Part shown: piece after piece, positions 20,422 through 53,842 of the stretch
Numbering within the stretch: position 1 is the first letter of the stretch
How the letters are laid out: each line of letters starts with the position of its first letter
Virus record (IMG/VR): IMGVR_UViG_3300047558_000137
Span: 62,001 to 126,000 of that record
Direction: 5' to 3' (one strand)
DNA: 64,000 bases
Notes under the pieces: model-generated
Database searches by the model: none
What the model was told of the DNA's origin: nothing
Seen by the model: the letters and a program-made list of their open reading frames with translations, nothing else
Position numbers and translations under genes: made by a program

Positions 20422-20431
20422 ATATTTCCTT

Positions 20432-20647
20432 TTAAGTTCCACAATCCATGCGCCAAGGACACATAGATAAAGTAACAGTTGCACAATCATCCTGACCAAA
20501 ACATCGTGGTTGATTGGTTCTCTTTAATCTAATTATTGTGTGAATCTTTTTGCGTTCTTCGCTATTGCTATGCCCTGTATTAGAGAGCATGGCTTCTTCA
20601 TTGAGCAATTTTTGCAGCTCACTTAATCCAGAAGATTCTCGTTCCAT
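20432..20647 (-). CDS. Possible small Cys-containing protein
   Basis: ORF fills the queD-aceA gap; C-terminal RC...DC...MCPWRMDC; start uncertain. Confidence 0.4.
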
Positions 20648-21259: not shown

Positions 21260-21265
21260 TATTTA
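21260..21265 (-). promoter_or_regulatory. T4-like late promoter box TAAATA
   Basis: GATAAATAC overlapping the PRTase stop, upstream of the queD leader. Confidence 0.5.
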
Positions 21266-23760: not shown

Positions 23761-23766
23761 GCACCT

Positions 23767-23775
23767 ATTATAACA
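23767..23775 (-). promoter_or_regulatory. Extended -10 promoter for the lipoprotein gene
   Basis: TGTTATAAT (TGn-TATAAT) 6 nt upstream of the ATG at 23760. Confidence 0.5.
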
Positions 23776-23785
23776 TAGTTTCGAA

Positions 23786-26155: not shown

Positions 26156-27105
26156 GTTTTTATTTCTTGTTTATATGGTTGCCCGAACAGCCCTGCAAAA
26201 AAATTGTCAGCATTTCTTTGTCTACGAGCAAGGGTATGTTGATTTAATTTATACAGATCTTGGGCCATTAACGAATCTAATAATTCGTGTACCTTGTCTA
26301 TTCTACTAGACCAGTTTAATTCTGTATCATAATACTTATGATCAACAATATCGTCAAATGTGTCCACACCTAAACTACGCAAGTGATCTACAGCACCTGG
26401 TGCACCGATCATTAAAAATAATTGCCCACTGGCAACGGATTTCCATGTCTTCTCTGTAATAAAGACTTCAGGTAACACTGTTGTTTCTGTGATAAGATTT
26501 ATATAACTGTTACTATATGCAGGATTATAAATTTCATCTTCGACCCCGGGGCGAATTTTATTTCTATTAGGCAATGAATCTTTAATTGTATTCCACTCCT
26601 CGGCAACACTAGGCTCTAATTTATAATCGTCGTGTCTGCCGGGATCAAAGTCGGACCGGTGCATAGTAAACAGCATTTTGTCAAAGTAGGACTTTTTGCG
26701 TAATGCCAGATAATTATAGATTCTATTAAAACGTGGTGCGGCATTAAGGCATGACACAGGATAGAGTTTTTCTAGTGTGTTAATACGTAAACAGCGTTGA
26801 TTAAAATTATCTTTTGTCCATTCGTACCACCACGGATAAAATAATAATCTAGGTTTTCTTAAATGGTCAGCTGGATTATATGTTAAAAGAATAAAGTTTA
26901 TATTATTTTCTTCCAGTAACTGATATACGTAATCAATAGAAGTTGACCAATGCTCACTGCTTAAATCAGCAATAACCAATGGATAGTTTTTAAATTCTTC
27001 TATGTGCTCGACAATATTATAGTTGATATTATTGAGAAAATAAAAGGCATTTGTTTGGTTTCGAAGAACTATCAAGTCGCTGGTTGGGCTCTGCTGCAAT
27101 ACCAT
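26134..27105 (-). CDS. Putative glycosyltransferase (GT10-like TEK motif)
   Basis: YINLITET...FITEKTWK...GQLFLMIG; paralogue of 7439..8620. Confidence 0.5.
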   Translation of the reverse strand: MVLQQSPTSDLIVLRNQTNAFYFLNNINYNIVEHIEEFKNYPLVIADLSSEHWSTSIDYVYQLLEENNINFILLTYNPADHLRKPRLLFYPWWYEWTKDNFNQRCLRINTLEKLYPVSCLNAAPRFNRIYNYLALRKKSYFDKMLFTMHRSDFDPGRHDDYKLEPSVAEEWNTIKDSLPNRNKIRPGVEDEIYNPAYSNSYINLITETTVLPEVFITEKTWKSVASGQLFLMIGAPGAVDHLRSLGVDTFDDIVDHKYYDTELNWSSRIDKVHELLDSLMAQDLYKLNQHTLARRQRNADNFFAGLFGQPYKQEIKTCINTLK

Positions 27106-28079
27106 TTATATGCACTATCAATAATTTCTTCTATGCTACTGTGTTGGGGTTTCCAGCCTAGCCATGTTTCTGCATCGTCGGCATCGGCAACTAGTCGTTC
27201 TGGATCGCCAGGTCGCTTGGGACCATAGTTAACAAAAGGCAACCCGTAAGTATTAACTACATAGTCAACAATGTACTTATTACTAATTCCTTGGTTGGTC
27301 CCCAGATTAAAGATATGGCAATCTGACACACCGGTAATTGTACTGCGTTCTAGAAACTCTGCGGCACGTACATGTGCTGTAGCAATATCCCATACGTGTA
27401 CATAGTCGCGCACACACGTACCATCGCTAGTTCCATAATCATCACCATTAATGGTAAATCCACGACCTGCTAGGCTTGCTTCTAATACACGGGCAACAAT
27501 GTGCGTGGCATTAGGTTCTTGGCCTAGATCAAAGTCTTTAGGTTCAGCGCCCGCGGCATTAAAGTATCTAAAGACTACACTGTTAAGATTGTATGCTCTA
27601 GCATAGTCCCATAAGACTTCTTCGATCATGTCCTTGGACTTGCCGTAAGGACTCATTGGTCTCTTAGGGTGTCCTTCTTTTAATGGAAGGTCTTCAGGCT
27701 CAGGATCGCCATATACTGCGGCACTGCTACTAAACATAATGACAGGTTGCTTCTTAAAGTCCTTAATGTAGTTTAAGAACTTAACGGTCTTGGCTACATT
27801 GTTATCATAATAGTCAGCAGGATCTGTTACACTGGGACCAACTAGACTAGTGCCAGCACAGTGTACAATGATATCGGGCTGTAGATCGAAGATAGTTGCT
27901 AGACTTTCATCGCTTGAAAAGTCATTAACAAAGAACCCGTCTAGGCCCTTTAGTGTATGTTCACGTAGAACACGATCAATAACAAACACACGGTTGTCTG
28001 CGTTAGCATACTTAAATGCTCGTGCGACATGGCTACCAATGTAGCCACATCCACCTGTAACAATAATAGTTTTACTCAT
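27072..28079 (-). CDS. galE: UDP-glucose 4-epimerase-like SDR
   Basis: TGGCGYIGSH, FSSSAAVYG, YGKSK, FRYFNAAGA, DGTCVRDYVHV, RPGDP. Confidence 0.85.
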   Translation of the reverse strand: MSKTIIVTGGCGYIGSHVARAFKYANADNRVFVIDRVLREHTLKGLDGFFVNDFSSDESLATIFDLQPDIIVHCAGTSLVGPSVTDPADYYDNNVAKTVKFLNYIKDFKKQPVIMFSSSAAVYGDPEPEDLPLKEGHPKRPMSPYGKSKDMIEEVLWDYARAYNLNSVVFRYFNAAGAEPKDFDLGQEPNATHIVARVLEASLAGRGFTINGDDYGTSDGTCVRDYVHVWDIATAHVRAAEFLERSTITGVSDCHIFNLGTNQGISNKYIVDYVVNTYGLPFVNYGPKRPGDPERLVADADDAETWLGWKPQHSSIEEIIDSAYKWYCSRAQPAT

Positions 28080-29007
28080 TTACAATTGCATCAGGGTCTA
28101 CAGCTAGACCTTGCCATTCTTTAATTTTAATTTCTTCTGTGCTGGGTTCGTCGTCATGCCATGAGCCGATCCAACGTGTGCCAGTCCATTTAGCTTGATA
28201 TGTATAACTGTTCTTACCGGCAGTTTTAACCATGTAGATACCGTTGCGTACAGGGTTAATCTTCTTAGGGAACCAATCAGTCATAGTGTATTCGATGTCA
28301 TCCATATTTGAATACTTTTCCCACTTATTATCGTTTTTGTTACTGCCGGCAATGTAAAAGCCAAAGTCCGAACTCTTGCCGTCTGTACTACCACCCCAGT
28401 TGTCAATAGTTTCACCATCGTACTCAACATAGTTGACGATTTCTTCACCATCAATTTCATCGTAGCCTAGTGTTAGTTTGGTAATATCAAATGGAGATTT
28501 AAGCTCAATTTCGCCTTCGAAGAACGTGCCTTTTTCGTTACTGTTACCAATAAACACAACAGTACCATCTGGCTTCTCACCAATCCAAACTTCTTCGTTA
28601 CAAGTCCACTCTGGTTGATCTTCATCGTAAGTAAAATCGTCAAAGCTCTTTTGGAATACGGTCTCACCGTTTTCATCTTCGATTTGCAGTGTACCAGCAT
28701 TACGACTTACACCGTGTGCATGACCCATACTGTCGCATTCGTACCACGATCCTGATGGAAATGGTTGCATGTGATCGGGAATATTGTTAATTTCTGCATA
28801 CTCGTGGTCCCAGGCGTATTCACTTAAATCAAGTCTGCGTGATCTAAAATAATCGTAAATCTCACGAGTTACAGTGCCCATAACCTTTTCACCACCGTAG
28901 CCCCACATAGTGATCTTGTAGGTACGTGGAGTGAACTTGAGATGTTCAAGTAGCTTTTCGTGTTCTGGGTTAACTGTTTCAATATTCGTCGTCTTCTTCT
29001 TGCTCAT
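28072..29007 (-). CDS. Hypothetical acidic protein
   Basis: 311-aa ORF, overlapping packing. Confidence 0.7.
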   Translation of the reverse strand: MSKKKTTNIETVNPEHEKLLEHLKFTPRTYKITMWGYGGEKVMGTVTREIYDYFRSRRLDLSEYAWDHEYAEINNIPDHMQPFPSGSWYECDSMGHAHGVSRNAGTLQIEDENGETVFQKSFDDFTYDEDQPEWTCNEEVWIGEKPDGTVVFIGNSNEKGTFFEGEIELKSPFDITKLTLGYDEIDGEEIVNYVEYDGETIDNWGGSTDGKSSDFGFYIAGSNKNDNKWEKYSNMDDIEYTMTDWFPKKINPVRNGIYMVKTAGKNSYTYQAKWTGTRWIGSWHDDEPSTEEIKIKEWQGLAVDPDAIVNE

Positions 29008-29230
29008 AGAAATCCTTTGATAGCGTATCTACAATTTTACATTTTTTGTAAATATCTGTCAATTCAATCATACGATCAAATCCATCAACATAATACTTAC
29101 TGTTTGCCGCTACAGCCCGTAGGACAATTTTGAGCAAATGATATGCTCGATCGGGACAGATGTCTTCCCACCAGATAATTTCATCCAATGATTCGTGCCA
29201 GGCACGAAACCCCGATCTAGTTAGAAACAT
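28979..29230 (-). CDS. Hypothetical protein
   Basis: 83-aa ORF. Confidence 0.5.
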   Translation of the reverse strand: MFLTRSGFRAWHESLDEIIWWEDICPDRAYHLLKIVLRAVAANSKYYVDGFDRMIELTDIYKKCKIVDTLSKDFYEQEEDDEY

Positions 29231-29472
29231 TATAAATCCTTTAATGTTTTTAGCATTATGTATTGTTCAAACACTTCTACTAACTCAGGGTCACCCCCGA
29301 GATAGTATTCTGCTGCGGCCTTCATACTAAGTGCCATTGCGGCTGCTTCGGTAATAGTGGGCCATTTTGCTTGACAGCACTCTAACCAGATTTCTTGTTT
29401 AGAATTTAGACTCATGTGTGTATTTGCGATAATCAGTTGACATACGCAGCCATTGCTCGCCCTTACCTTCAA
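29230..29472 (-). CDS. Hypothetical protein (true start probably downstream, MSLNSKQ)
   Basis: 80-aa ORF overlapping the GT stop. Confidence 0.45.
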   Translation of the reverse strand: MKVRASNGCVCQLIIANTHMSLNSKQEIWLECCQAKWPTITEAAAMALSMKAAAEYYLGGDPELVEVFEQYIMLKTLKDL

Positions 29473-30589
29473 TTATATCACAAATACGATTTACAGTATT
29501 ATCAGTCCAGTCACTTATTTTGCCCATATTATCATGTGGCTTTTCTAGCAACTTTTCTAATTTGTTAAGTGCATCTTCTATTGACCAAGGAATGTAAAGG
29601 CGTTCAGCATCGTTCGCAAATGATTCAGGAAAACTCCGATAAGCAGGATACAGAACATTGCTTCCCAGGGTGTCAGCTTCTGAGACTGTGTTAGAGACCC
29701 AATCTTGTAAAGCACAATTAAAAAGCACACGGGTATCATTGAGTAAATTATAGTAATCATTCTTTTCTAGATCCTCGTGAATAACTAGTGTACCTTCTTC
29801 CTGCATACGGCGTGTACGTGCCATATAGCTGTCGTTGTTGTACTTGAGTTTAGCACCCGAAAAGATGCAGAACTCTACATAACGACTTGGGTGACGCTTA
29901 TTCCAAGCATCAATTAAGTCCATGTAGAAGTCTGGTTGCTTCTCCTGATCCCAACGAGCCGCAAAGCCTACACGATGCTTACGCTCATTAAATGGCTTCA
30001 ATGGTCCTGCTACACGCTCACGCACTTCCGCTTTGCCAAATGCTAGACCACTAATGTTGTAGATAGGGCAGTCCCATCCTGCAACCTTCATGTGCATGAC
30101 CATTTCTTCATTAGAAGCGAGTACTGCTCCATTCGTTTTACGAACGATTTCACAGACCATCTGTTCATAGAGCCCCATCCACTTGGACATTCCCCATACG
30201 TGAACAAAGTCGTCAGGATCAATTGACTGTGCCAAACACCGTACATAAATGCGTGGTCGCATTGCTTCAGGTACTTGATCAATGATATAAGGTAGACTTT
30301 CAATGCCCGGCTGGAACATGTCTTCAAAGTAGATAACATCTTCATTAGTGACTTCTCCTGCCTTCATCATCTTAACTAGATTCATTAGTTGACTCATACC
30401 AAAGTAACTGCGACCATGTGCATCTAGCACCTGTCCAGTTACAATAGCTTGATCATTGCCGAGTGTCTCGCCGGGTACCAACACATAGTCAATACCTCTC
30501 CGATCGAACACACGCTTATTCCATTCCTCTAGCTGTAGAGTGTAACGTGCTTTGTAGGACTCAAGTCCCATGTAGTATAGTTTTCTCAT
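29399..30589 (-). CDS. GT-B fold glycosyltransferase
   Basis: GFAARWDQEKQP, LFNCALQDWVSNTVSEA, VLYP.YRSFPE (GT4-like E-x7-E-equivalent region); size similar to phage DNA glucosyltransferases. Confidence 0.7.
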   Translation of the reverse strand: MRKLYYMGLESYKARYTLQLEEWNKRVFDRRGIDYVLVPGETLGNDQAIVTGQVLDAHGRSYFGMSQLMNLVKMMKAGEVTNEDVIYFEDMFQPGIESLPYIIDQVPEAMRPRIYVRCLAQSIDPDDFVHVWGMSKWMGLYEQMVCEIVRKTNGAVLASNEEMVMHMKVAGWDCPIYNISGLAFGKAEVRERVAGPLKPFNERKHRVGFAARWDQEKQPDFYMDLIDAWNKRHPSRYVEFCIFSGAKLKYNNDSYMARTRRMQEEGTLVIHEDLEKNDYYNLLNDTRVLFNCALQDWVSNTVSEADTLGSNVLYPAYRSFPESFANDAERLYIPWSIEDALNKLEKLLEKPHDNMGKISDWTDNTVNRICDIIEGKGEQWLRMSTDYRKYTHESKF

Positions 30590-30987
30590 TCGTCTTTGTA
30601 TTTCTTTAATAAAGGACTATTGATATGCTTAATAGCCTGTTCAAGATGCTTCATTTTTTGATCTTCGAGTTCCCATTTGCTTAGACTCCAGTGATTTTGG
30701 GCATCAACAGCAGTTGTGCCATAGCGTGTATTCATAGCGGAGATACTACGCATTTCACTTTCCATACGTTCTAGTCTTCGTATGATCTGATTTTGATCAT
30801 CGAGTACTTGACGCAATGGTCCAATGGTGGCACCTTTACGACCCTCAGGCTTGGTTAAAATAACCATCATCATTAGACTACGTAGTGCATTGATCACACG
30901 CTCGTCGTTGCTAGTTAATGCTTCATCAAACATGTCAATGAAACGCTCAAGATCGAAGTCTGCCTGCTCTTTTTCTCTCATTCCCAT
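30586..30987 (-). CDS. Hypothetical coiled-coil protein
   Basis: 133-aa ORF. Confidence 0.6.
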   Translation of the reverse strand: MGMREKEQADFDLERFIDMFDEALTSNDERVINALRSLMMMVILTKPEGRKGATIGPLRQVLDDQNQIIRRLERMESEMRSISAMNTRYGTTAVDAQNHWSLSKWELEDQKMKHLEQAIKHINSPLLKKYKDE

Positions 30988-30990
30988 TTT

Positions 30991-31650
30991 TTATCCTTTA
31001 ATGTAATAGCCTTTACCGTAGCTACGACTGTGTACGATTTTATGGCATTCTATAGGTATTCCAAACCGTCCATTGGCCAATTCACCAACGAATCTAGGAA
31101 CTCCCCCATCTGTTGTATTATATAAAATATCGTCAAACACAACAATGCCACCTGGACGAACTAAGGGTTCGTATAATAACCAATCGCATAATACAGAATG
31201 GTAACTATGATCCCCATCAATGAACAACAGGTCAACTTGATGTACAGCATCGTATATTTTTTTAACAGTTGCAGGATCTTGGCTACTACCAATGGCAAAG
31301 TGTGATCGCCCATCGTTGCCAAACGAATGCCCAAAAACCTGTTCAGTTCTTAGGCTAAATTCGTTTACTCGATTGTGATTTTGTTCAATGGTGTAGACTT
31401 GGTCTGCAATATTACGCCACATAACGTGCGTACTACCAAAATGACCTAATCCTATTTCTAATACAGTAGATAGTCTGCCGGGCATAACGTGTAGAAGATC
31501 TTGGATTTCTCTTCGGACCTGTTGCATTCCGTGAACCGGCATCACTTGTAAGTCGGGCAATGGATCGATTGCATCTTCTGCATAATACTTTCCATTACCG
31601 CACATACTAACCCAACTATCTAACTTAGCCAGGATTTCGTCTACGTTCAT
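30991..31650 (-). CDS. Class I SAM-dependent methyltransferase (Methyltransf_24-like)
   Basis: VLEIGLGHFGS, VDLLFIDGDHSY, LVRPGGIVVFDD. Confidence 0.85.
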   Translation of the reverse strand: MNVDEILAKLDSWVSMCGNGKYYAEDAIDPLPDLQVMPVHGMQQVRREIQDLLHVMPGRLSTVLEIGLGHFGSTHVMWRNIADQVYTIEQNHNRVNEFSLRTEQVFGHSFGNDGRSHFAIGSSQDPATVKKIYDAVHQVDLLFIDGDHSYHSVLCDWLLYEPLVRPGGIVVFDDILYNTTDGGVPRFVGELANGRFGIPIECHKIVHSRSYGKGYYIKG

Positions 31651-31653
31651 TGA

Positions 31654-31926
31654 TTAACGTGCCCTAAAGTTATGGTTACCGTTTGTGTTGCGAGGACGGA
31701 ACTCAGTACGTTCACGTCGTGGGCTGCGCCACTGATCCCATGGTTCACGCCCTTTAGCGTACTTCATGTATTCTGCATAAGCAGGCTTACGCTCGTTGTA
31801 TAGGTGTGACTCGTCAAAGACGTAGCCATAGTCTACGCAAAATCTTTTAAATGACTCAAGGTCCTCGAAAATGTTGCGGACTTCAGATTTCATTGTGAAG
31901 TATTTTTGTAGATGTTCGTTAGCCAT
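31654..31926 (-). CDS. Hypothetical protein
   Basis: 90-aa ORF with SD. Confidence 0.65.
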   Translation of the reverse strand: MANEHLQKYFTMKSEVRNIFEDLESFKRFCVDYGYVFDESHLYNERKPAYAEYMKYAKGREPWDQWRSPRRERTEFRPRNTNGNHNFRAR

Positions 31927-31935
31927 TTTTATTCC

Positions 31936-32376
31936 TTAAACGCTAATTTGTTGTGGTCGGTGAGTTTCATATTTAATAAGTGCGCCGTTTTCACCATCTT
32001 CGGCCACTTCAATCCAGACACTACGTCCAGGATATTTTGATGCGATTTGCAAATACAAATCGTCTGCAATCATTTCGCACGACTTAAAGTCAAGGTGTAT
32101 GGTTCCATCTCTGTAGAGATTTTCCAGCCAACGCTTGAACTGAATAAATTCCACATCCCGGTCATTATGAAAAACATCGATCCAAACACGGAAGTGGAAT
32201 ATATGGCGATGAGGCACCCCAAGAAAAGATACATCATACTCATCACCGGTCGCCAAAGCAGGATCAGTTGCTGCGGCTGGATATTTGTGAATGCCTTCTT
32301 TACGGAATGTAACCCAGATTTTTCTATCTGCACGTTCTTTAATCCTATCTATAGTAGCACGTTGTTCTTGATTCAT
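31936..32376 (-). CDS. Second QueD/PTPS-like T-fold protein
   Basis: GIH.YP, PHRHIFHFRV, DRDVEFI..K..L, SCEMIA..L, V.EDGENG. Confidence 0.6.
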   Translation of the reverse strand: MNQEQRATIDRIKERADRKIWVTFRKEGIHKYPAAATDPALATGDEYDVSFLGVPHRHIFHFRVWIDVFHNDRDVEFIQFKRWLENLYRDGTIHLDFKSCEMIADDLYLQIASKYPGRSVWIEVAEDGENGALIKYETHRPQQISV

Positions 32377-32882
32377 AATGGTGTATCCTTAGTATATTTA
32401 GACCAGTCAGTAAAGACTTTTCTATTTCTTAATTCATGTAGACTATGACACCAGACTCCTGGATTAGTTGCAGCAAAGTCTTTGTCGTCTAGCTTAATTG
32501 TAGCATTGTAGCCTAGCATTTGTATATAGGGTAATTTTACCGAAATCATCGGAATAAAATTATTGTATTCGCAAAGAGCTCCTTCTACTAGACCTTCAGC
32601 CGATTGTACATCAATATCTAATGTACATAGATATCCTTGTTTTAGATAATGTGTAATCATATCTTCCCAGGCCTTCCATGTATCAGCATCATTAATTGCT
32701 GGATTAGGAAAGCTCATGTTAGCGCCAAAGTAAATGTGCTGACCCGGCTTCTTTAATCGAGCAGTAATATCTGCTGTTGATTGTACGCCAACAACAAACA
32801 AGGTATCCATGCCATATGCAGGGGTGTGTTCTACTTCAACACCGTAAAAGAAATTTACATCTTCATGCCCGGGTCTGTCCAT
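32373..32882 (-). CDS. Hypothetical protein in the deazaguanine cluster
   Basis: 169-aa ORF coupled to the TGT-like gene. Confidence 0.7.
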   Translation of the reverse strand: MDRPGHEDVNFFYGVEVEHTPAYGMDTLFVVGVQSTADITARLKKPGQHIYFGANMSFPNPAINDADTWKAWEDMITHYLKQGYLCTLDIDVQSAEGLVEGALCEYNNFIPMISVKLPYIQMLGYNATIKLDDKDFAATNPGVWCHSLHELRNRKVFTDWSKYTKDTPL

Positions 32883-34404
32883 CTTCCAATTCCTCTAGTT
32901 TATGTTCGTCAAGTTCTACTTCGGGGTCTTCGTCTACAAACTCAACAAGTCTGTTAAACACAGTATTTGAGTTCATAGTCTTTTTACCTTTAAATCCACG
33001 AGTACCTACAATTTCCATCCAGTAGTCACTATATGAATTAATTATAGCAATGCTTTCTTCTTTAGTCTTTGCTGCAAATATACGTTCTACAATATCTTCA
33101 AAGTAAGAATAGTCGCCAGTACTGTAACGCATCATAGCAGGATGTTCTCCGGCATCGAATCGACGATTGGCTTCTTGTACCGCTGTTAAATGTTGATAGA
33201 CATTATGACCCATTAGCAATGCATATGAGAAACTGTCCCAACTAGTCTTGCCTTCTTTGCCAATCTTATTTAGATCTCCTGGCTTGTAGATACAGATATC
33301 TTTCATAGTTAGCAAGTCACTAATGGGACTATTTTGCCAACGATCGTAGATGCCGTCCTGTACTACGCCGGTGGCCCAAGGTCTGGTGTCTGTGGCGTAT
33401 TTTTTGTCGTCTGCGCTTGGGGCCATTCTGTAGCTCCATTTTGAGTCGTGTTCGAAGACGTTTTCGAAATAGACTTGGCCATTCGCCGTCGCAAGGAATG
33501 GACTAGCGCAATCAAAACTAATAGTAAAAGCAGGGTTGACATATTTTCTTACAGCTCTCTGAATAACGGTGAGCAATACTGCCCACTCTAATTTACTTGT
33601 GCCCAAGAAGTGCATCCAATCATGCCGGCCTTCTTGTAACAAGTTATCGTAACGTAGTTCAGTTAGGCGTTTAAGCACCAAATGAACATCACACATGTTC
33701 TGTCCTCCCATTGCCCATCCATCAAAGTGTGTATCTGGATAAACATCAGGATCACAAAATTCTTTCATAGTCTGGTACCATTCTTCGGCACTGGTATGAT
33801 TATCACCTTGTAACACATTTAAGAAACGTGCGCCACCATTCTTAACACCCTTACGATGCTGCATGAAATAGTTATTATTAAACTTAGTTGCGTCTACTGC
33901 TTCTTGCAGTGTAGTAATCTGACAGGCTGCACTTGCTTTCTTATCATGTATAACCCAAGTAGGAATATCAAGAATCATGCCATAATCGGCAATATTGTCT
34001 AGCCAGTTTAATATGAGCTCGCGTTTTTTCTGCGCCTTAGGACAACCCGAATTGGCTTTCCAATCCCCTTCCCACAGCCCTTTAGCAATCTGGAAACCAC
34101 CCGAGTCGCCAAGAATAAAAGATCCAGCTTCCCTATTTCGAACCATATCCTCTGACCAATCTTGTTTATTAAGGTCAAGGTTCGCATGTCCTCCACTATA
34201 CAAACTCCATTTATACGGAAATAAACCCTTAGTTGAGTTGAGCCAATTAAGCTGCTCCATATCAGTAAGACCCTGAGGAAATCTTGCGGGATCAACATAC
34301 TGTTCATTACGTTGTTTGCCTATAAATGTAGCATAGAAGCCGGAAATAGCAGGGAGAAAAACTGCATAGTCTAATTGTTTACTTGTTAAATCATCTTGCG
34401 CCAT
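32863..34404 (-). CDS. TGT-fold deazaguanine transglycosylase (DpdA-like)
   Basis: LGDSGGFQI (catalytic Asp), MILDIP, NVLQG, GWAMGG, MHFLG, SFDCASP, HN; 513 aa; no CxCxxC zinc motif seen. Confidence 0.75.
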   Translation of the reverse strand: MAQDDLTSKQLDYAVFLPAISGFYATFIGKQRNEQYVDPARFPQGLTDMEQLNWLNSTKGLFPYKWSLYSGGHANLDLNKQDWSEDMVRNREAGSFILGDSGGFQIAKGLWEGDWKANSGCPKAQKKRELILNWLDNIADYGMILDIPTWVIHDKKASAACQITTLQEAVDATKFNNNYFMQHRKGVKNGGARFLNVLQGDNHTSAEEWYQTMKEFCDPDVYPDTHFDGWAMGGQNMCDVHLVLKRLTELRYDNLLQEGRHDWMHFLGTSKLEWAVLLTVIQRAVRKYVNPAFTISFDCASPFLATANGQVYFENVFEHDSKWSYRMAPSADDKKYATDTRPWATGVVQDGIYDRWQNSPISDLLTMKDICIYKPGDLNKIGKEGKTSWDSFSYALLMGHNVYQHLTAVQEANRRFDAGEHPAMMRYSTGDYSYFEDIVERIFAAKTKEESIAIINSYSDYWMEIVGTRGFKGKKTMNSNTVFNRLVEFVDEDPEVELDEHKLEELEDGQTRA

Positions 34405-35023
34405 AAAATTGTACTTGTTCTATTAATCTATAATCTTCTTCAAAATAGTCTTGTATACGTTGAAGGTATTTAGGTTCGTCCTGCATAGCTTCATTAAAAA
34501 GCATCTTAAATTGCCTACGCTCGGGACTATTTTTGCTTACGTGCTGATAATCATATCTATCATATTTGTTATCACCGCAGTGCGTTTTTATAAAATCACT
34601 AAAGTTCTTTCTATAATTGTCATCGCACATCATAAACGTGCAATTGTCTGTATTTAGACCTACTAGAAATTTTATTTGTTTTTCTGTATGATCGTCAAAT
34701 GTAACACGATCGAAAACTAAATCAAAAACGCTTTGAGTAAAATGTCCTGCACTTATATGCGGGTGGTATAATGTAAAATATTCAGCTATGCCACTTAGCC
34801 AACGATCAACAGGATCACGTAGTACAACTAGGGCATCTTTGTCTAACATGTCTGTGCGATAGTTGTAGAACTCCCACCCCCAGTCTTTGAGGTTGGGTTT
34901 AGTCCAACTACTGGCATTCTTGGGAATGTATACGTACATTAGGTTAACACCTGCCTTACTCATACATTCACCATAGACATGGCCCTTATGTTGCCATTCC
35001 GTGATACCTGATTTAATTATCAC
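34391..35023 (-). CDS. Sulfotransferase family protein
   Basis: YVYIPKNASSW (5'-PSB loop), VLRDPVDRWLSG (3'-PB), DDHTEKQ. Confidence 0.75.
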   Translation of the reverse strand: MIIKSGITEWQHKGHVYGECMSKAGVNLMYVYIPKNASSWTKPNLKDWGWEFYNYRTDMLDKDALVVLRDPVDRWLSGIAEYFTLYHPHISAGHFTQSVFDLVFDRVTFDDHTEKQIKFLVGLNTDNCTFMMCDDNYRKNFSDFIKTHCGDNKYDRYDYQHVSKNSPERRQFKMLFNEAMQDEPKYLQRIQDYFEEDYRLIEQVQFYGAR

Positions 35024-35754
35024 TTGGTCTGTGCAAGAATAGTGTAGCTGTATTCGATTAAGCCACTATCAACAGTAATCATCATAGCGCCTTCATCACT
35101 GATCTTAAATGTCTTATCTCCAGACAATCCAAGAATACCGATAACGGCTGCAACTGGCCAATTCCATCCTTTAGCAATTGCGCCACTGACGCCACTTTGG
35201 AATACAAAGTTGCCGGCATGGCGGCTATGATCACCAAACGTAAACTTCAAATCGTTGTTTTCTGTTTTAGCGATAAATGTAGTTTCTTCGCTGTTGGCAC
35301 TGGCCATAAACTTTAGTCGTTGAATGCCTTGCACAGTTGGAGCAAAGTCTACGTGCCATGGAACTGGACGCATTTTAAACTTCTTTAGTTTATCGTTAAC
35401 AACCTGTGCAGTCATAAAACGATAGTCGTTCTTAAAGTCGCCTGTGGCGTTTTCAAAGTGAACACCATTTGGAACATCTACACCATTGGGATCTTTTTGT
35501 GTAGTGATTGTGAGCTTTGCATTTTCTGCATACTCAGGAATACCTAAAATAGTGTTTAGCTTGCCTAGGTTAGGCATACCAAATGTACCAATAAAGTCCG
35601 GGTGTGGGTTTTTAAATTTGGCTTCAACAACAAATAAATTTTGTTCTGCTAGTGCGGTAACAACAGTTTCTTCTGCTGTGCCAACAACTTTAACCAATTC
35701 TACGCTGCCTAAGTTGTATGTGTGTTGTACGATGTCCTTAAGATAATCTTGCAT
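35020..35754 (-). CDS. Sliding clamp (T4 gp45-like DNA polymerase accessory protein)
   Basis: 244 aa; FGMPNLGKLN.IL, DYRF, ISDEG.M.I; located with DNA polymerase. Confidence 0.6.
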   Translation of the reverse strand: MQDYLKDIVQHTYNLGSVELVKVVGTAEETVVTALAEQNLFVVEAKFKNPHPDFIGTFGMPNLGKLNTILGIPEYAENAKLTITTQKDPNGVDVPNGVHFENATGDFKNDYRFMTAQVVNDKLKKFKMRPVPWHVDFAPTVQGIQRLKFMASANSEETTFIAKTENNDLKFTFGDHSRHAGNFVFQSGVSGAIAKGWNWPVAAVIGILGLSGDKTFKISDEGAMMITVDSGLIEYSYTILAQTK

Positions 35755-35808: not shown

Positions 35809-36747
35809 TTAGATTTCTCTTTTTTCAATTGAGCCTAAAACTTGATGTGCCTTAACTGTTTTTAATGTGCCAGGTTTTTTAATTTCCAACCAACTAATAT
35901 TCGAACCATAGCTTTCATCATGCAATAGTTCAAATCCTAAACTCAAACATAATGGTACCAACAGGCTTTTTGGTAGATATGTTTGACTAAACTTTTCAGC
36001 CATACCTGCACCTGCAGGAGTATCGCCGTCGTTATAACTAAACAAGAACACGCCGCCGGGTCGCATTAATTCGTGTAATTGTTTTAGCATCTGTGTAACT
36101 GTATCAAAACTAACATAGTTAAAGAATCCCCAACTAAACACAAAGGCAAATTGATTTACTGGCAACGCAGATAAATTGTGATCAATCAGTTGATACTTGC
36201 GTAAACGTGCTTGATATACAGGCGGAAAACGATCGTTTGTACTATTTAGAAATTCAATATGCCTATCAGTTATGTATAACGGATCGCCTGCTACTAGATG
36301 CTGTGTCCATTCTCCATCTCTACAACCAATTTCTAATACAGGGTATTTCCAATCAGTATATCTTGCAATTTTTTGTCGAATAATAACTTCTAAGTCTGCG
36401 GTTACTTCAAGACGACGATTGTTCCTAACTTGCTCTACACTACCAACTCTTTCTTCAAGTTCATAATTGTTAGCAAACAGTTCTCGGGTCTTTAATAGTA
36501 TTCTACTGTCAATTGAATTTACGTGATCGTCTACACTTTTAAGTGTTTGATCTATACGTAGAAGAATTTGTTCGTAGTCTTTAACTAAAGTTAAAATAGC
36601 ATTCTTATACTCTGGGCGAGTGTCGGGGATTTCATCAATGATGCCTTGAAGTTTACTTTTAACATCATTAATGTTATCCACAGTGGGGCTTATATTAACT
36701 GCACTAGTTAATGATTGTTTTAACTTAGTTAAGTTATATAAGCTCAC
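35809..36747 (-). CDS. Class I SAM-dependent methyltransferase with N-terminal coiled coil
   Basis: VLEIGCRDGEW, FAFVFSWGFFNY, LMRPGGVFLFS. Confidence 0.8.
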   Translation of the reverse strand: MSLYNLTKLKQSLTSAVNISPTVDNINDVKSKLQGIIDEIPDTRPEYKNAILTLVKDYEQILLRIDQTLKSVDDHVNSIDSRILLKTRELFANNYELEERVGSVEQVRNNRRLEVTADLEVIIRQKIARYTDWKYPVLEIGCRDGEWTQHLVAGDPLYITDRHIEFLNSTNDRFPPVYQARLRKYQLIDHNLSALPVNQFAFVFSWGFFNYVSFDTVTQMLKQLHELMRPGGVFLFSYNDGDTPAGAGMAEKFSQTYLPKSLLVPLCLSLGFELLHDESYGSNISWLEIKKPGTLKTVKAHQVLGSIEKREI

Positions 36748-36748
36748 T

Positions 36749-39415
36749 TTAATCTTCCCAGCTGAATAGTGAGTCGAATGTGGTTTTAATATCAGTATTG
36801 CCGGGAATGTCCCAATCCAATACTCCTAATAGGTTTTCTACCTTTTGGTCTACGATTGTTGATTCCATTAGACCGTCATCAAACGGCAAGTCTTTGAACC
36901 ACTGTGGAATATGTAGTTCGTCTGTGGGATAACCGACGCTAGTATAACCTAGTGGATTATCACGTAGTTTACAGACAATGGTTTTCATACCATCAATGAT
37001 CTGCATACTGTAGTTGTCACCATGCATACGCTTTAGGTTGTTCCAGTTCATGGCTGCACGAACGTGCCCGGGCATGTTTGCTTTGCCCAATCTTGCTTCT
37101 TCAGCAGTATACTTGGTCAAGTTGTTTACACGCTTAGGTGTGCCCTTTTCCCATGCTGGACGATCTTTAAACAGTAATTTAAATTCACGTACTTTATCGT
37201 ATACGTGTTCTTTAGTACAACCTGTTAGAACATCTAGCAGTAGTTCACTTAAGAAGTCTTGTACAACCTTAGGTGTATCACTACGCTTTAGGTCAAGGCC
37301 CATGGCTTTTACTTTACCTGGCTTACCGTTGACATCAAGACGCTTGCCTTCCATATCGTAGATTAGCACAGCATAGCGTTTCTTCTTAATGAATAGTCCT
37401 TGTCCTGCAACAAGTTCTCGACCTGCGGCAATAATTGCGCCCATATCGCGTGGACAGTGGCAAGCACGTTCCATAAATGCAGGGAAAGATTCGTTTACTG
37501 CATCTGCAATAGTATCATAGAGCTGGATACAAATATCTTTGTTCCACTCCATCTTACCGGCTTCTACTTCTTCTTTGATGGCCGGCCACGCACTAAAGTA
37601 TACTGAGTCCGTGTCGCCGTAGATAATGCTTTCGCCAACATGGTCGTAGTTGCCCGTAATTGCCTCGTTAACGAAGCTGTCCATATGTTTGGCAATGATC
37701 CGCCCAGTGAGCGTTGTACTCTGCCCAATGCGCTGGTCAAAGAACCTGCACCCCGGATTAAGGATAGCCCCGTATAAGGAGTTGAGGTTAATTTTTTTGA
37801 CGAGCTGTCGCTTGTCCCAGAACGCAGTGTCTTCAGGAGTTTCTGCGGTCTTCTTTTTTGCTTGTAACTCTTTGCGCTCGGCATACCACCTTTCTAACAA
37901 TCCAGGCACAACGCCTTTCATGTCATATTTAAAAATTGTACCATTGGCACTTAGTGTCCACGGTTGGTTACTATCAAATAACATGTGCCAGACTTCTGCG
38001 GCACTGTGTATGGTACTAGTTCCAGACTCTTCCCAATCAACTGTAAGTTCTGTTCCTACTTCCATATTCATAACAGCTTGATACTCTAGTGTACCAAACA
38101 TGTTTTCCCAAGCATCTGCAAACGACGACCCTGCGGCCATTTTGTCTGCGATGTATTTGTCTGTCATGATTGTTCGGATTTGCCCAACAATCGTTTCTGG
38201 TCCCATGTTAAGGGCTCGAATAGTCGAGGGATAGAGCGAGTTGAGGTCGATGGCTCCAATGTCTCTGTGCATTCCTTTTTTGGGATAAGCAACATAGGCA
38301 CCTGCGGCTTGCGTGTTTTCTTGATCATCTCTATTTTTCCTATTTGGAACAATCATACCACGTTGGTGAGCTTCATTAATGATAGCCTGCTCTGTTACAG
38401 CAACCGCACCCATTGTGGTTTGTAACAACACCGTATTGTCATGAGCAAGTTCGTTAGCAAGATCTAGGAAACGTAGTTTCTTATCTAGTTTTGCTAACAG
38501 CATGGTATCTTGTCTGTTATAGTCAATGAACTTGGGAAAGTCCTTGTTATACAATTGGTCTAGAGTACCTTCGTAAGCAACCTTACGTTCATCTAGTTCA
38601 TACTCACCAATGGCATCCAAGCTATAACTATGTCGTTCCTCGTATGTATACTTGCGGTACAGTTGCATATAGTCCAAATGCACACGACCCAACAAGTCAA
38701 ACGTCAGTTGCTCTGCACCAAAACGTTCAAACATACGTTGTTTAGGTAATTGATTCCACAAGCATAGACGTCTAGTGTCGTCTTTACTCAACACCTTAGT
38801 AATACGCATTGTGGTATAGGGAATATCGAAACCTTCACTGTTCCAGCCAGATAATACATCAGCATCTTCAATTAGGTCAAGAAATGTATTGAGCATGTCT
38901 TCTTCACGCTCAAATAGGAAACAGTTTTCAAACTTACTACAGATTTCTTCTGCTGATTCCCACGAATAACTCTTGGGCGGAACAACCAGTGTAACTAGTT
39001 TGTCTAACCAGTCTAGGTAAACAGAAATAGCAGTAATTGCGTTAAATGGATCATCTGGTCGACTATAACCACGCACGGGATCAAAGTCGACCTCAATGTC
39101 AAAAAACGCTGCCTGTAGTTTAGGCGATTGGGCGCCTAGATAGTTTGTTTCAAGACAACGGAAAATGGGATTGATATCCGACTCCCATAGCCGTTTGTTT
39201 GAATTCATTTTAAGTTCTTTTTGATACTCTTTGTTGCTACGTGAGCTAAAGCGGCTCACTGGAGTACCGTAGATTGTGCGGAACTTACCGCGGGGGTCAT
39301 CATAATAAAAAATATAGTCCGCTGGATATTCGCGGTACTGTCTTTGACCATTTACACGCTCTACTACATGTATACGGTCTTTTTGCCTATCAAAGATAGC
39401 ATCAACGTAACTCAT
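36749..39415 (-). CDS. Family B DNA polymerase (T4 gp43-like)
   Basis: Exo FDIEVD, WNSEGFDIPY, YNRQD; pol DLNSLYPS, KINLNSLYG, YGDTDS, KKRY. Confidence 0.97.
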   Translation of the reverse strand: MSYVDAIFDRQKDRIHVVERVNGQRQYREYPADYIFYYDDPRGKFRTIYGTPVSRFSSRSNKEYQKELKMNSNKRLWESDINPIFRCLETNYLGAQSPKLQAAFFDIEVDFDPVRGYSRPDDPFNAITAISVYLDWLDKLVTLVVPPKSYSWESAEEICSKFENCFLFEREEDMLNTFLDLIEDADVLSGWNSEGFDIPYTTMRITKVLSKDDTRRLCLWNQLPKQRMFERFGAEQLTFDLLGRVHLDYMQLYRKYTYEERHSYSLDAIGEYELDERKVAYEGTLDQLYNKDFPKFIDYNRQDTMLLAKLDKKLRFLDLANELAHDNTVLLQTTMGAVAVTEQAIINEAHQRGMIVPNRKNRDDQENTQAAGAYVAYPKKGMHRDIGAIDLNSLYPSTIRALNMGPETIVGQIRTIMTDKYIADKMAAGSSFADAWENMFGTLEYQAVMNMEVGTELTVDWEESGTSTIHSAAEVWHMLFDSNQPWTLSANGTIFKYDMKGVVPGLLERWYAERKELQAKKKTAETPEDTAFWDKRQLVKKINLNSLYGAILNPGCRFFDQRIGQSTTLTGRIIAKHMDSFVNEAITGNYDHVGESIIYGDTDSVYFSAWPAIKEEVEAGKMEWNKDICIQLYDTIADAVNESFPAFMERACHCPRDMGAIIAAGRELVAGQGLFIKKKRYAVLIYDMEGKRLDVNGKPGKVKAMGLDLKRSDTPKVVQDFLSELLLDVLTGCTKEHVYDKVREFKLLFKDRPAWEKGTPKRVNNLTKYTAEEARLGKANMPGHVRAAMNWNNLKRMHGDNYSMQIIDGMKTIVCKLRDNPLGYTSVGYPTDELHIPQWFKDLPFDDGLMESTIVDQKVENLLGVLDWDIPGNTDIKTTFDSLFSWED

Positions 39416-53833: not shown

Positions 53834-53842
53834 ATCAGATAT

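Follow-up and report, generated by a model that had tools for sequence, protein, structure and literature searches.

The DNA analysed here, a 64,000-nt window (positions 62,001 to 126,000 of IMG/VR record IMGVR_UViG_3300047558_000137), comes from a freshwater jumbo phage of roughly 374 kb and carries, next to the DNA polymerase gene, a block of genes that resembles known 7-deazaguanine DNA-modification systems. A sequence-only reading had proposed that a co-oriented block of nine genes, driven by a TTGACA-N17-TATACT promoter, runs from a sliding clamp through a sulfotransferase, a DpdA-like transglycosylase, a QueD-like second T-fold protein, a methyltransferase and a GT-B glycosyltransferase (GT), with three unknown open reading frames (ORFs) as candidate new enzymes, and that the block might produce a glycosylated, methylated or sulfated deazaguanine in DNA. 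The observation itself is confirmed; all nine ORFs are found on the minus strand in this order and at the stated coordinates, and most of the functional labels hold. As described below, the island is larger than was first recognized. Co-orientation carries little meaning here, however, because nearly all genes from 4.3 kb to 64 kb of the window are on the minus strand.

The gene island

The upstream boundary of the conserved block is a family B DNA polymerase (36749-39415, minus strand, as are all genes of the window described in this section), identified by Pfam DNA_pol_B and the exonuclease domain and present in 61/61 relatives; here and below, relatives are related freshwater phage contigs, and each denominator counts those that reach the position in question. 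It is followed by a class I SAM methyltransferase of 312 aa (35809-36747; Pfam Methyltransf_12/23/25/11), absent from the sequence-only reading, which is conserved in the clade (74/76) but fast-evolving (24-41% identity). A sigma-70-like promoter element, TTGACA-N17-TATACT, lies at 35804-35776 (-) in the 54-bp gap upstream of the clamp-like gene; it is one of the two best matches (11/12) in 17 kb, and a similar element sits at the same distance, about 48-55 nt upstream of the start codon, in most relatives. The total number of promoter-like sites in the region is not above the shuffled control (55 against 48 +/- 8); a promoter function is inferred from sequence and position alone. The clamp-like protein (244 aa, 35020-35754) is a probable sliding clamp at best; its only family match is phrog_12062, and searches returned no Pfam or PDB sequence hit. 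It is present in 77/77 relatives, and homologues lie just upstream of the TGT-like gene in PA5oct, Phosso and Vibrio phage 2.275.O. A second Phosso paralogue, beside that phage's polymerase-DpdL-GT cluster, is annotated as a sliding clamp.

The 210-aa protein (34391-35023) has no Pfam hit itself, but it aligns end to end with a homologue, L080:5399-6022 (L numbers denote related contigs), that passes the Pfam Sulfotransfer_2 threshold (36.7 bits, cut-off 22), with which it shares the motifs IPKNASS, LRDPxxRWxSG and FDDHT. It therefore belongs to a Sulfotransfer_2-like family, although it is present in only 18/79 relatives.

The 513-aa protein (32863-34404) is a DpdA-like member of the tRNA-guanine transglycosylase (TGT) superfamily. 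Its AF2 model (pLDDT 89.9) has a TGT fold, with the top 11 Foldseek PDB hits all being TGT or ArcTGT (E 7e-7). D100-S101-G103 (DSGGFQ) and D298 (FDC) are invariant, and D146 is nearly invariant. Comparison by hhalign to the DpdA3-type protein of Acidovorax phage ACP17 gives 96% (E 1e-9), but this match covers only residues 95-303; Pfam's TGT model does not reach threshold, and no recognizable zinc-site motif is seen. With tblastn, homologues were found only in PA5oct, where the gene sits beside QueE, in Phosso and in one Vibrio phage, where it sits beside QueF/QueC/FolE. We conclude that this protein is a distant relative of DpdA3 that forms a separate, longer subfamily, the DpdA3-type proteins seen here being 416-437 aa.

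The 169-aa protein (32373-32882) is of unknown function; an AF2 model (pLDDT 76) predicts an alpha/beta fold with no convincing structural match. It is present in 66/66 relatives, with homologues in PA5oct (46%) and in ACP17 (34%), where it lies between FolE and DpdA3, and of the three unknown ORFs it is the only one conserved beyond this clade. The 90-aa ORF (31654-31926) encodes a small basic protein found within the clade only (49/49 relatives at 33-51% identity), and the 133-aa ORF (30586-30987) is variable (20/48 relatives, with only about half its length conserved); neither gave a family hit.

The QueD-like protein (146 aa, 31936-32376) is not a new enzyme; it is DpdL, the QueD paralogue proposed to be a 7-carboxy-7-deazaguanine decarboxylase (PMC10516641). 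Its sequence LGVPHRHIF matches the LxxxHRHxF signature, it has PTPS-like neighbours, it is 56% identical to ACP17 DpdL and 58% to PA5oct EST35_0318, and it is present in 55/55 relatives. The 219-aa protein (30991-31650) is confirmed as a methyltransferase of the Methyltransf_24/CmcI type (PF13578, 50 bits, and RMNT_CmcI), but it is present in 0/43 relatives; other methyltransferases occupy the same slot in L033 and L038.

The 396-aa protein (29399-30589) is a GT4-type GT-B glycosyltransferase, an assignment that is supported indirectly. Its own Pfam match, Glyco_trans_1_2 at E 0.005, is below the cut-off; however, close relatives carry PF00534 or PF13524, and the model of a near-identical cluster matches GT4 families at TM 0.7-0.8. 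Queuosine mannosyltransferase (QTMAN)-like clusters are among its language-model feature neighbours, which we regard as a lead only. The GT is present in 42/42 relatives.

The island then continues beyond the nine genes. Two strain-specific ORFs of 83 aa and 311 aa (28072-29230) are present in 0/36 relatives and have no Pfam or PDB hit; an 11/12 promoter-like site lies at 29062-29034. UDP-glucose 4-epimerase (GalE; 27072-28079) is identified by NCBIfam TIGR01179 (290.9 bits, cut-off 262.3) and is present in 35/36 relatives, nearly always next to the GT. A variable 323-aa protein (26134-27105) is present in 4/31 relatives and gave no hits. A 342-aa radical SAM enzyme (25127-26155; Pfam Radical_SAM, only generic NCBIfam hits) is present in 0/31 relatives, but four other radical SAM clusters occupy the variable slots elsewhere. 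A short DegT/DnrJ/EryC1-like protein (199 aa, 24531-25130; PF01041, 70 bits over two stretches) keeps an SF..GK stretch that aligns with the region holding the putative Lys motif of the window's full-length DegT, and it is present in 30/31 relatives. GTP cyclohydrolase I (FolE, 247 aa, 23786-24529; PF01227, 131 bits), which was hidden behind an out-of-frame ORF at 23869-24315, is present in 31/31 relatives.

Further downstream lie a type I purine phosphoribosyltransferase (PRTase, 177 aa, 21263-21796; Pfam Pribosyltran, weak XGPRT/HGPRT hits), with homologues in the BUCT-ZZ01 and PA5oct deazaguanine clusters; QueD of the 6-carboxytetrahydropterin synthase family (20623-21177; Pfam PTPS, 54.8 bits; 53% identical to ACP17 QueD); and a QueE-like 7-carboxy-7-deazaguanine synthase (285 aa, 17473-18330). 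The latter has no Pfam hit at 1e-3 but is 45% identical to BUCT-ZZ01 QueE and 33% to PA5oct QueE, and its N-terminal stretch ELFYSAQGEG...FLRTFGC looks QueE-like. No QueC or QueF was found among the ORFs scanned (most ORFs of 100 aa or more) across the 64 kb, although QueC could lie outside the window.

Conserved core and variable cargo

Whether the decorating enzymes co-occur with the DpdA-like gene in relatives had been set beforehand as a test of the proposal, and the outcome differs by enzyme. The transglycosylase, the 169-aa protein, DpdL, the GT, GalE, the DegT-like protein and FolE form a core whose order is invariant in relatives, whereas the 219-aa methyltransferase and the sulfotransferase are strain-variable cargo rather than conserved pathway members. 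These cargo genes sit in slots that elsewhere hold sugar-nucleotide dehydratases, epimerases, a UDP-sugar dehydrogenase, radical SAM/SPASM enzymes, methyltransferases and sulfotransferases; the sulfotransferase is in slot A and the 219-aa methyltransferase in slot C. The sugar genes are sandwiched between DpdL and FolE in every relative, which fits a sugar being added within this pathway. Within the freshwater clade, however, co-occurrence is largely shared synteny. Among isolated phages, in 50,697 phage records, full-length members of this GT family occur in 18; all 18 are among the 28 DpdL-bearing records, with the GT within about 3 kb of DpdL, in different gene orders and with two different transglycosylase types. 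Homologues lie next to DpdL in PA5oct, Phosso, ACP17, BUDD/X1, BCSR5 and BUCT-ZZ01, i.e. in six further lineages, making seven in all, with genomes from 156 to 469 kb.

Could the GT, GalE and the sugar-tailoring cargo instead act on virion proteins or the host envelope, and sit here only because an early or replication-gene region tolerates insertions? In this alternative, the island would make plain 2'-deoxy-7-deazaguanine (dDG) or dCDG, as in phiST and VP1. Cellulophaga phage phiST has DpdL without a GT and carries plain dDG, so the GT is not needed for the base itself, and dDG has no obvious acceptor group for a sugar. Additionally, the window holds a second sugar pair (dehydratase plus full-length DegT) far from the island at 2302-4352, more distant GT4 relatives in PhiXhv-type phages sit with GlmS and a deacetylase and no deazaguanine genes, and the variable slots take up many unrelated ORFs. 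Against this reading is the restriction of the full-length GT family to sites beside DpdL and the transglycosylase in seven lineages with rearranged gene orders, together with the position of the sugar genes between DpdL and FolE. We consider this alternative unlikely, but it is the strongest of the rivals.

Comparison with known systems

The closest described systems are the DpdA3/DpdL/FolE-QueD-QueE systems of phiST, Campylobacter phages and ACP17 (Cui, Hutinet et al., NAR 2023, PMC10516641). Shared with the window are a CDG (7-carboxy-7-deazaguanine)-only pathway with no QueC seen, a QueD paralogue with the LxxxHRHxF signature, a distant TGT-family transglycosylase, and a location next to the replication genes; ACP17 itself carries homologues of the window's GT, 169-aa protein and DpdL. 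The published description does not include the GT, GalE, the 169-aa protein or the tailoring cargo, and phiST, the only member with chemistry, lacks the GT. Cui et al. could not reconstitute dDG from the ACP17 or phiST dpdA and dpdL genes alone and suggested that further enzymes may be needed.

Pseudomonas phage PA5oct (Wroclawvirus) carries, in one run at EST35_0314-0322, a clamp-like protein, a 513-type TGT-like protein (35% identity), a GT homologue (hhalign 99.6%), DpdL, a PRTase and QueE, with the TGT-like, GT and DpdL genes side by side; the 169-aa homologue lies elsewhere in the genome, and the cluster has no GalE, sulfotransferase or Methyltransf_24 gene. PA5oct DNA resists several restriction enzymes, which is read as modified G, and is targeted by nucleases that sense hypermodified DNA (PMC12191111); in the parts of that study consulted, only QueE and a PTPS-like gene were cited, not the transglycosylase or the GT. 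The chemical identity of the PA5oct modification has not been established.

In T-even phages, and for other phage DNA glycosyltransferases acting on 5hmC or 5-hydroxycytosine, the logic is the same; a base-modifying step makes a handle, a GT-B enzyme then adds a sugar from a UDP-sugar, and the sugar identity differs between related phages. Those systems act on pyrimidines, however, and the window's GT gave no Pfam match at E <= 0.01 other than Glyco_trans_1_2, so none to a T4 glucosyltransferase family. No purine glycosylation in DNA turned up in our literature searches. In the huimycin/dapiramicin pathways (HuiC methyltransferase, HuiG glycosyltransferase) and in the glycosylated queuosine of animal tRNA (QTMAN, QTGAL), a GT, with or without a methyltransferase, decorates a 7-deazaguanine-derived base, but the acceptor is a free base (secondary metabolite) or the cyclopentenediol of queuosine in tRNA, not DNA; Pfam's QTMAN_N domain was not detected in the window's GT.

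A proposed route to a decorated guanine

Our favoured explanation, which we hold with no more than even confidence, is that the block is the core of a guanine-hypermodification island. The gene identities, folds, motifs and co-occurrence come from the analysis; every chemical step, DNA as the target, the acceptor atom, and whether the sugar is added before or after the base enters DNA are inferred. In this view, FolE, QueD and QueE would turn GTP into CDG, and DpdL would process CDG, the published proposal being decarboxylation to 7-deazaguanine. The 513-aa transglycosylase would then swap guanine in phage DNA for the deazaguanine base, and the GT would add a sugar, with the adjacent GalE supplying or epimerizing a UDP-hexose donor. 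7-Deazaguanine itself has no obvious hydroxyl to glycosylate; the acceptor might be N2, a carboxylate of CDG, or something else. The PRTase may recycle the released guanine. The earlier interpretation is thus partly supported; a 7-deazaguanine island with a tied GT holds, conserved roles for the 219-aa methyltransferase and the sulfotransferase do not, and glycosylated deazaguanine in DNA, although well supported by comparative genomics, rests on that alone in the absence of chemical data for any GT-bearing phage.

The order of steps could also be reversed, with the sugar added to the free deazapurine base or its nucleotide, and the unusually large DpdA-like enzyme inserting the already glycosylated base. 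HuiG glycosylates a free 7-deazapurine with UDP-GlcNAc, eukaryotic TGT accepts the bulky base queuine, and DpdL was predicted to act on the free base; moreover, the 513-aa protein is longer than the DpdA3-type proteins and forms its own subfamily. On the other hand, the same GT family also pairs with the shorter DpdA3-type enzymes of ACP17, BUDD and BUCT-ZZ01, and all known phage DNA glycosylations (T-even and 5hmC systems) are post-replicative, on the polymer. None of the present data bear directly on the order, and we regard this possibility as doubtful.

Less likely still, the modified base might enter DNA through nucleotide pools, with the PRTase converting the deazapurine base into a nucleotide, as in tubercidin and toyocamycin biosynthesis, for incorporation by the phage polymerase; the TGT-like protein would then act on tRNA or have only an auxiliary role. 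A purine PRTase does sit in the deazaguanine clusters of the window, BUCT-ZZ01 and PA5oct, the island abuts the polymerase and the clamp-like gene, and complete replacement of G, as reported for DpdA3 phages and VP1, is easier to picture this way. However, ACP17, BUDD and Phosso show no PRTase in the cluster, every 7-deazaguanine phage studied encodes a DpdA, DpdA2 inserts bases into DNA in E. coli, and the PRTase can equally be explained as salvage of released guanine.

If the favoured route is correct, this phage may carry a sugar-decorated guanine not yet described. Its strain-specific cargo, i.e. the sulfotransferase-like protein, the CmcI-type methyltransferase and the radical SAM enzyme, would decorate that sugar, and because related phages carry other tailoring and sugar-nucleotide enzymes in the same slots, the decoration probably differs from phage to phage.

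Organization of the island

The stretch comes from a freshwater metagenome and belongs to a phage contig of about 374 kb, in which almost every gene of the window from 4.3 kb to 64 kb lies on the minus strand. The sequence-only reading had described a co-oriented block running from a sliding clamp to a GT-B glycosyltransferase (GT) behind a TTGACA-N17-TATACT promoter, and that observation held: the ORFs are present in the order described, namely a clamp-like protein of 244 aa (35020-35754) followed by proteins of 210 aa (34391-35023), 513 aa (32863-34404), 169 aa (32373-32882), 146 aa (31936-32376), 90 aa (31654-31926), 219 aa (30991-31650), 133 aa (30586-30987) and 396 aa (29399-30589). A megablast search of the block against 50,697 phage records found no near-identical phage DNA.

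The TTGACA-N17-TATACT element lies at 35804-35776 on the minus strand, in the 54-bp gap before the clamp-like gene, and is followed by a GGAG ahead of the ATG. It is one of only two 11/12 matches in 17 kb, although the total count of promoter-like sites is no higher than in shuffled sequence. A TTGnnA-N17-TATAnT element sits at the same distance from the start codon in most relatives, which supports the element modestly but does not prove that it functions. Among sequencing runs, only DNA metagenomes hold the sequence, plus one RNA run holding 6% of the sampled words. The second 11/12 element (TTGACA-N17-TAAAAT; 29034-29062, minus strand) ends 27 nt upstream of a strain-specific 311-aa ORF, and the inserted cargo may therefore bring its own promoter.

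Identities of the encoded proteins

The 513-aa protein could not be placed by sequence. Searches of Pfam, PHROGs and NCBIfam, a phmmer search of the PDB and a profile search of the PDB all returned no hit, and within an alignment of its family only 3 of 51 members reach E about 0.04 on the Pfam TGT model (PF01702). An exhaustive HMMER search found 939 representatives at 50% identity, and a word-indexed search found more than 7,500 clusters at 90% identity, nearly all unnamed. It was structure prediction and profile-profile comparison that placed the family. An AlphaFold2 model (pLDDT 89.9, pTM 0.91), for which the alignment left out two rows from annotated-record loci, has as its 11 best Foldseek matches in the PDB only bacterial or eukaryotic tRNA-guanine transglycosylases and archaeosine TGT (E 7e-7 to 3e-4, probability 1.0, TM 0.41/0.53), which identifies a TIM-barrel TGT fold. 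In 48-51 diverse family members D100, S101 and G103 (in GDSGGFQ), H265 and D298 (in ISFDC) are invariant, and D146 is nearly so; judged by motif rather than by a residue-level structural alignment, the aspartates correspond to D102, D156 and D280 of Z. mobilis TGT. The family consensus shows no CxCxxC...H zinc-site motif, with only one conserved Cys in a DIC stretch and a conserved HN.

Profile comparison links this family to the 424-aa protein of Acidovorax phage ACP17 that lies between FolE and DpdL and that we take to be the DpdA3 of Cui et al. (96%, E 1e-9); the match aligns the DSGGxQ, D-IP and SYDS/SFDC motifs, and the BUCT-ZZ01 equivalent matches at 94%. By tblastn, full-length relatives occur in only three groups of isolates: the PA5oct-like Pseudomonas jumbo phages (35%), where the gene lies near QueE; Sinorhizobium phage Phosso (30%); and Vibrio phage 2.275.O (33%), where it lies directly beside QueF, a YhhQ-type transporter, QueC, an amidotransferase and FolE. 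Proximity to 7-deazaguanine synthesis genes, the criterion used to call a DpdA, is thus satisfied in PA5oct and the Vibrio phage, as it is in the window, where DpdL, FolE, QueD and QueE-like genes are present. We conclude that the 513-aa protein is a DpdA-like transglycosylase of a separate, longer subfamily, with base exchange on DNA inferred.

The 146-aa protein, which the sequence-only reading called QueD-like and a second T-fold, reads ...FLGVPHRHIFHF..., exactly the LxxxHRHxF signature that in place of QueD's CxxxHGH defines DpdL, the QueD paralogue proposed as the 7-carboxy-7-deazaguanine (CDG) decarboxylase (PMC10516641). It is 56% identical to ACP17 DpdL and 58% identical to PA5oct EST35_0318, an HMM built from it finds the founding member, phiST CGPG_00067 (E 1.7e-16), and the model of a near-identical cluster matches a PTPS cluster at TM 0.73/0.82. 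The rest of the CDG pathway is also in the window: QueD at 20623-21177 (Pfam PTPS), a QueE-like protein at 17473-18330 (45% identical to BUCT-ZZ01 QueE), a purine phosphoribosyltransferase (PRTase) at 21263-21796 and FolE at 23786-24529 on the minus strand (Pfam, 131 bits). A criterion for DpdL is a genome with FolE, QueD, QueE and a DpdA but no QueC; the first four are present, and no QueC or QueF turned up among the ORFs scanned across these 64 kb of the roughly 374-kb genome. FolE is easy to miss, as a 148-aa out-of-frame ORF inside it (23869-24315, minus strand) shadows it; this ORF had appeared to be a gene with homologues in relatives, but those tblastn matches are spurious and arise because the underlying DNA is conserved. 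The FG-GAP ORF downstream (22558-23859) is over-extended at its TTG start and overlaps the FolE stop. Between QueE and QueD, at 19213-20499 on the minus strand, lies a full-length isocitrate lyase (Pfam ICL, E 1e-102), an unusual auxiliary metabolic gene for a phage.

The evidence that the 396-aa protein is a GT4-like GT-B enzyme is indirect. The protein itself reaches only E 0.005 on Pfam Glyco_trans_1_2 (17.2 bits against a cut-off of 25), and a profile search against the PDB gave only E 0.047, to group-1 GTs, although relatives at about 80% identity carry PF13524 or PF00534. As a proxy for a two-Rossmann-domain GT-B fold, the Atlas model of the best-scoring cluster (feature score 1.00) matches GT4 clusters at TM 0.70-0.80 over 334-357 residues. 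Membership in the T4 alpha- and beta-glucosyltransferase families was not supported, as the Pfam scan at E <= 0.01 returned only Glyco_trans_1_2 and the PHROG scan returned nothing. The language-model neighbours of the protein include 'GT4-conflict' clusters and, at 0.97, tRNA-queuosine mannosyltransferase (QTMAN) clusters, but this is a lead rather than a test, because the Pfam scan did not detect the QTMAN_N domain (PF12038).

Two strain-specific ORFs separate the GT from a GalE equivalog at 27072-28079 (TIGR01179, 290.9 bits, above its cut-off), after which come an unknown 323-aa ORF, a radical SAM enzyme, a 199-aa DegT-like protein and FolE. Phmmer searches of the PDB with the 323-aa ORF, the 311-aa ORF and the radical SAM enzyme were uninformative. 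We considered whether the DegT-like ORF and the next ORF might be a split aminotransferase, a reading that was rejected because the next ORF is FolE. A second sugar-nucleotide module lies far from the island, in a plus-strand run at 919-4352 comprising DHFR, thymidylate synthase, an NAD-dependent sugar epimerase/dehydratase with RmlD-like hits and a full-length DegT/DnrJ/EryC1 aminotransferase. We found no evidence for a 5hmC/5hmU route to a sugar acceptor; the ThyA-like gene scores 354.8 bits as an ordinary thymidylate synthase.

Among the remaining proteins, the 219-aa protein is a Methyltransf_24 / CmcI-type SAM methyltransferase (PF13578, 50 bits, cut-off 26.3; PF04989, 28.3 bits, cut-off 23.2), as the sequence-only reading had it in calling a methyltransferase. 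The 210-aa protein, called a sulfotransferase, has no Pfam hit itself but aligns along its whole length with a family sharing IPKNASS, LRDPxxRWxSG and FDDHT motifs, one member of which (the homologue L080:5399-6022) passes Pfam Sulfotransfer_2 (PF03567; 36.7 bits, cut-off 22). Two motifs that we read as PAPS-binding, PKxxxS/T and RDPxxRxxS, are conserved across the aligned family and appear in the window as IPKNASS and LRDPVDRWLS. The 169-aa protein gave a medium-confidence alpha/beta model with no convincing structural neighbor: a language-model search hinted at GH18-like TIM-barrel fragments at scores of 0.86 or less, and Foldseek against the PDB and AFDB gave only weak partial matches (HpaI aldolase, STAS, GH5; E >= 0.16 in the PDB), all of which we rejected as assignments. 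An HMM comparison also found no homology between this protein and the 'glycosylase' of Phosso (XYS97380).

For the clamp-like protein, neither the Pfam scan nor a profile search against the PDB returned a match, although a Phosso homologue is annotated as a sliding clamp. This 240-aa protein (35020-35754, minus strand; in the compared phage loci, L001:6912-7658, L002:7214-7936, L003:6430-7149 and L087:8541-9281) lies immediately upstream of the 513-type transglycosylase in PA5oct, Phosso and Vibrio phage 2.275.O as well as here; Phosso has two paralogues, the second of which lies beside its polymerase-DpdL-GT cluster, and in PA5oct the protein was detected in virions by mass spectrometry. If the protein is a sliding clamp, the transglycosylase might be coupled to the replisome.

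Outside the island, the window encodes a ClpB-type double AAA+ chaperone (762 aa) and a DnaJ (280 aa) side by side at 51545-54685 on the minus strand, and two periplasmic solute-binding-protein-like ORFs (TctC-like and phosphonate-binding/NMT1-like) at 60765-62851 on the minus strand. It also encodes two GH19 (chitinase class I-like) proteins on the minus strand, at 41509-42144 and 57735-58364, which may be endolysins and the first of which has a TAT signal; a ferritin-like protein (42821-43255) and a dCMP deaminase (40847-41512) lie nearby.

Conservation among close relatives

Co-occurrence in relatives of the GT, methyltransferase and sulfotransferase with the DpdA-like gene had been named beforehand as a test of the sequence-only reading, and we examined it in 80 IMG/VR contigs whose transglycosylase is 78-88% identical to that of the window, counting for each gene only those contigs long enough to reach its position. 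PolB is present in 61/61, the clamp-like gene in 77/77, the 169-aa protein in 66/66, DpdL in 55/55, the 90-aa protein in 49/49, the GT in 42/42, GalE in 35/36, the DegT-like protein in 30/31 and FolE in 31/31. In contrast, the sulfotransferase-like protein is present in 18/79, the 133-aa protein in 20/48, the 323-aa ORF in 4/31, the 219-aa methyltransferase in 0/43, the 311-aa ORF in 0/36 and the radical SAM enzyme in 0/31. In other words, the GT co-occurs with the DpdA-like gene, whereas the methyltransferase and sulfotransferase that had been highlighted are accessory and not conserved. A further methyltransferase of 312 aa, between PolB and the clamp-like gene (35809-36747, minus strand), is present in 74/76 relatives but is only 24-41% identical, while its neighbors are 50-88% identical; it is evolving unusually fast.

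The core order is fixed, and between the core genes lie variable slots, which across the 80 contigs hold 48 different sequence clusters. A Pfam census of these clusters found four radical SAM enzymes, three of them with SPASM domains; two further NAD-dependent epimerases/dehydratases, one of them like GDP-mannose 4,6-dehydratase, with RmlD-type hits; a UDP-glucose/GDP-mannose dehydrogenase; two unrelated methyltransferases in the same slot as that of the window; an SDR; and the sulfotransferase family. This is the repertoire of a sugar-nucleotide tailoring cassette, and it is sandwiched between the base-modifying genes and FolE.

Co-occurrence in distant phage lineages

Synteny within one clade is weak evidence, and thus we turned to isolated phages. 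DpdL occurs in 28 of 50,697 records, full-length members of the GT family occur in 18 records, and all 18 are among the 28. In each lineage inspected, the GT lies within about 3 kb of DpdL. For example, in the PA5oct group the TGT-like gene, GT (EST35_0317 in PA5oct) and DpdL lie in a row (GT match by hhalign 99.6%, E 1.5e-24), with EST35_0364 as the 169-aa homologue of PA5oct, and in Phosso the order is clamp, one unrelated ORF, DpdL, GT, then FolE and QueE. In ACP17 the order is FolE, 169-aa homologue, DpdA3, GT, DpdL, QueE; in BUDD and X1 it is FolE ... GT, DpdA3-type, DpdL, QueE; and in the cyanophage BUCT-ZZ01 it is QueE, PRTase, QueD, FolE, ..., DpdA3-type, DpdL, GT. BCSR5 is the remaining lineage. 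The GT-DpdL pair occurs with both transglycosylase types. In Xanthomonas phage BUDD, a short 'PAPS reductase family' (PP-loop ATPase-like) protein (5885-6379 of the BUDD locus, L089) sits between FolE and the GT/DpdA3/DpdL run and could be a QueC-like or sulfur-related tailoring step in that lineage.

The converse does not hold, as DpdL phages with no GT within 10 kb are RHph_I1_18, Bakedbeans, Ahp1, D479, the phiST group and MA9V-3, and in phiST plain dDG has been measured. In two of these, Vibrio phage Bakedbeans (L090:9230-10381) and Chryseobacterium phage MA9V-3 (L095:9431-10312), the DpdL domain is the C-terminal part of longer proteins (383 and 293 aa), which suggests fusions with an unknown N-terminal domain. 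The Vibrio phage with the QueC/QueF (preQ1) route has the 513-type enzyme but neither DpdL nor the GT. Only more distant, partial GT matches, in PhiXhv-type phages, lie outside deazaguanine clusters, and those sit beside GlmS and a deacetylase. These comparisons bear on an alternative in which the island makes plain dDG and the sugar genes serve another target; the main argument against it is the exclusive pairing of the GT with DpdL, which withstands rearrangement.

A proposed route to a glycosylated deazaguanine

In the most likely mechanism, GTP is converted to CDG by FolE, QueD and QueE; DpdL processes CDG, by decarboxylation in the published proposal; and the DpdA-like enzyme exchanges guanine in phage DNA for the deazaguanine. 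The GT4-like enzyme would then add a sugar whose UDP donor is provided or epimerised by GalE, and the variable cargo would modify that sugar, in this genome by means of a sulfotransferase-like protein, a CmcI-type methyltransferase of a kind often used for sugar O-methylation, and a radical SAM enzyme. The PRTase could recycle the released guanine towards GTP. What our analysis establishes is which genes are there and that they occur together; every chemical step, including base exchange itself, is inferred, as are DNA as the target, the acceptor atom and the order of steps. It is possible, for example, that the base is glycosylated before insertion. Incorporation through nucleotide pools via the PRTase is less likely, because several GT-bearing clusters lack a PRTase.

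The literature offers some support. Published data on PA5oct DNA have been read by their authors as a modified G in GA and/or GG, and PA5oct is restricted by nucleases that sense hypermodified bases (PMC12191111). The dpdA and dpdL genes of ACP17 and phiST, expressed together in E. coli, gave no dDG, and the authors suggested that unknown enzymes may be required. Additionally, free 7-deazapurines are methylated and glycosylated in the huimycin pathway. We found no report of a glycosylated 7-deazaguanine in DNA.

The proposal that the block makes a further decorated deazaguanine is thus partly supported. The core (DpdA-like, DpdL, FolE/QueD/QueE) belongs with deazaguanine systems already described, differing in its separate, longer transglycosylase subfamily, whereas the conserved GT and 169-aa partners and the swappable sugar-tailoring cassette are, to our knowledge, undescribed, and make glycosylated deazaguanine DNA a concrete hypothesis that can be tested in culture. 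More tentatively, these phages, together with PA5oct-like phages, Phosso, ACP17, BUDD/X1, BCSR5 and BUCT-ZZ01, may carry in their DNA a glycosylated 7-deazaguanine that would be the first sugar-bearing purine in any genome, with a glycan diversified from phage to phage by a cassette of swappable sugar-nucleotide, methyl-, sulfo- and radical-SAM enzymes, much as O-antigens are diversified. In this view, the missing GT and 169-aa protein could also explain why the DpdA3 and DpdL genes alone could not be reconstituted in E. coli.

Implications

The comparative result turns this idea into a direct test in cultivable phages, including PA5oct, ACP17, BUCT-ZZ01 and Phosso, and names the GT and the 169-aa protein as the genes to add to the reconstitutions that failed. 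It also defines a new, very abundant DpdA-like subfamily that Pfam, PHROGs and NCBIfam all miss, and deazaguanine phages are therefore under-counted in freshwater viromes. The transglycosylase and GT families are very common in freshwater metagenomes, each with more than 7,500 clusters at 90% identity. Every 7-deazaguanine DNA modification known so far is a small substituent at C7, and every known DNA glycosylation is on a pyrimidine. A sugar-decorated deazaguanine would be a new class of DNA base, and it would bear on how phages evade restriction enzymes, CRISPR and the newly described glycosylase and END-nuclease defences.
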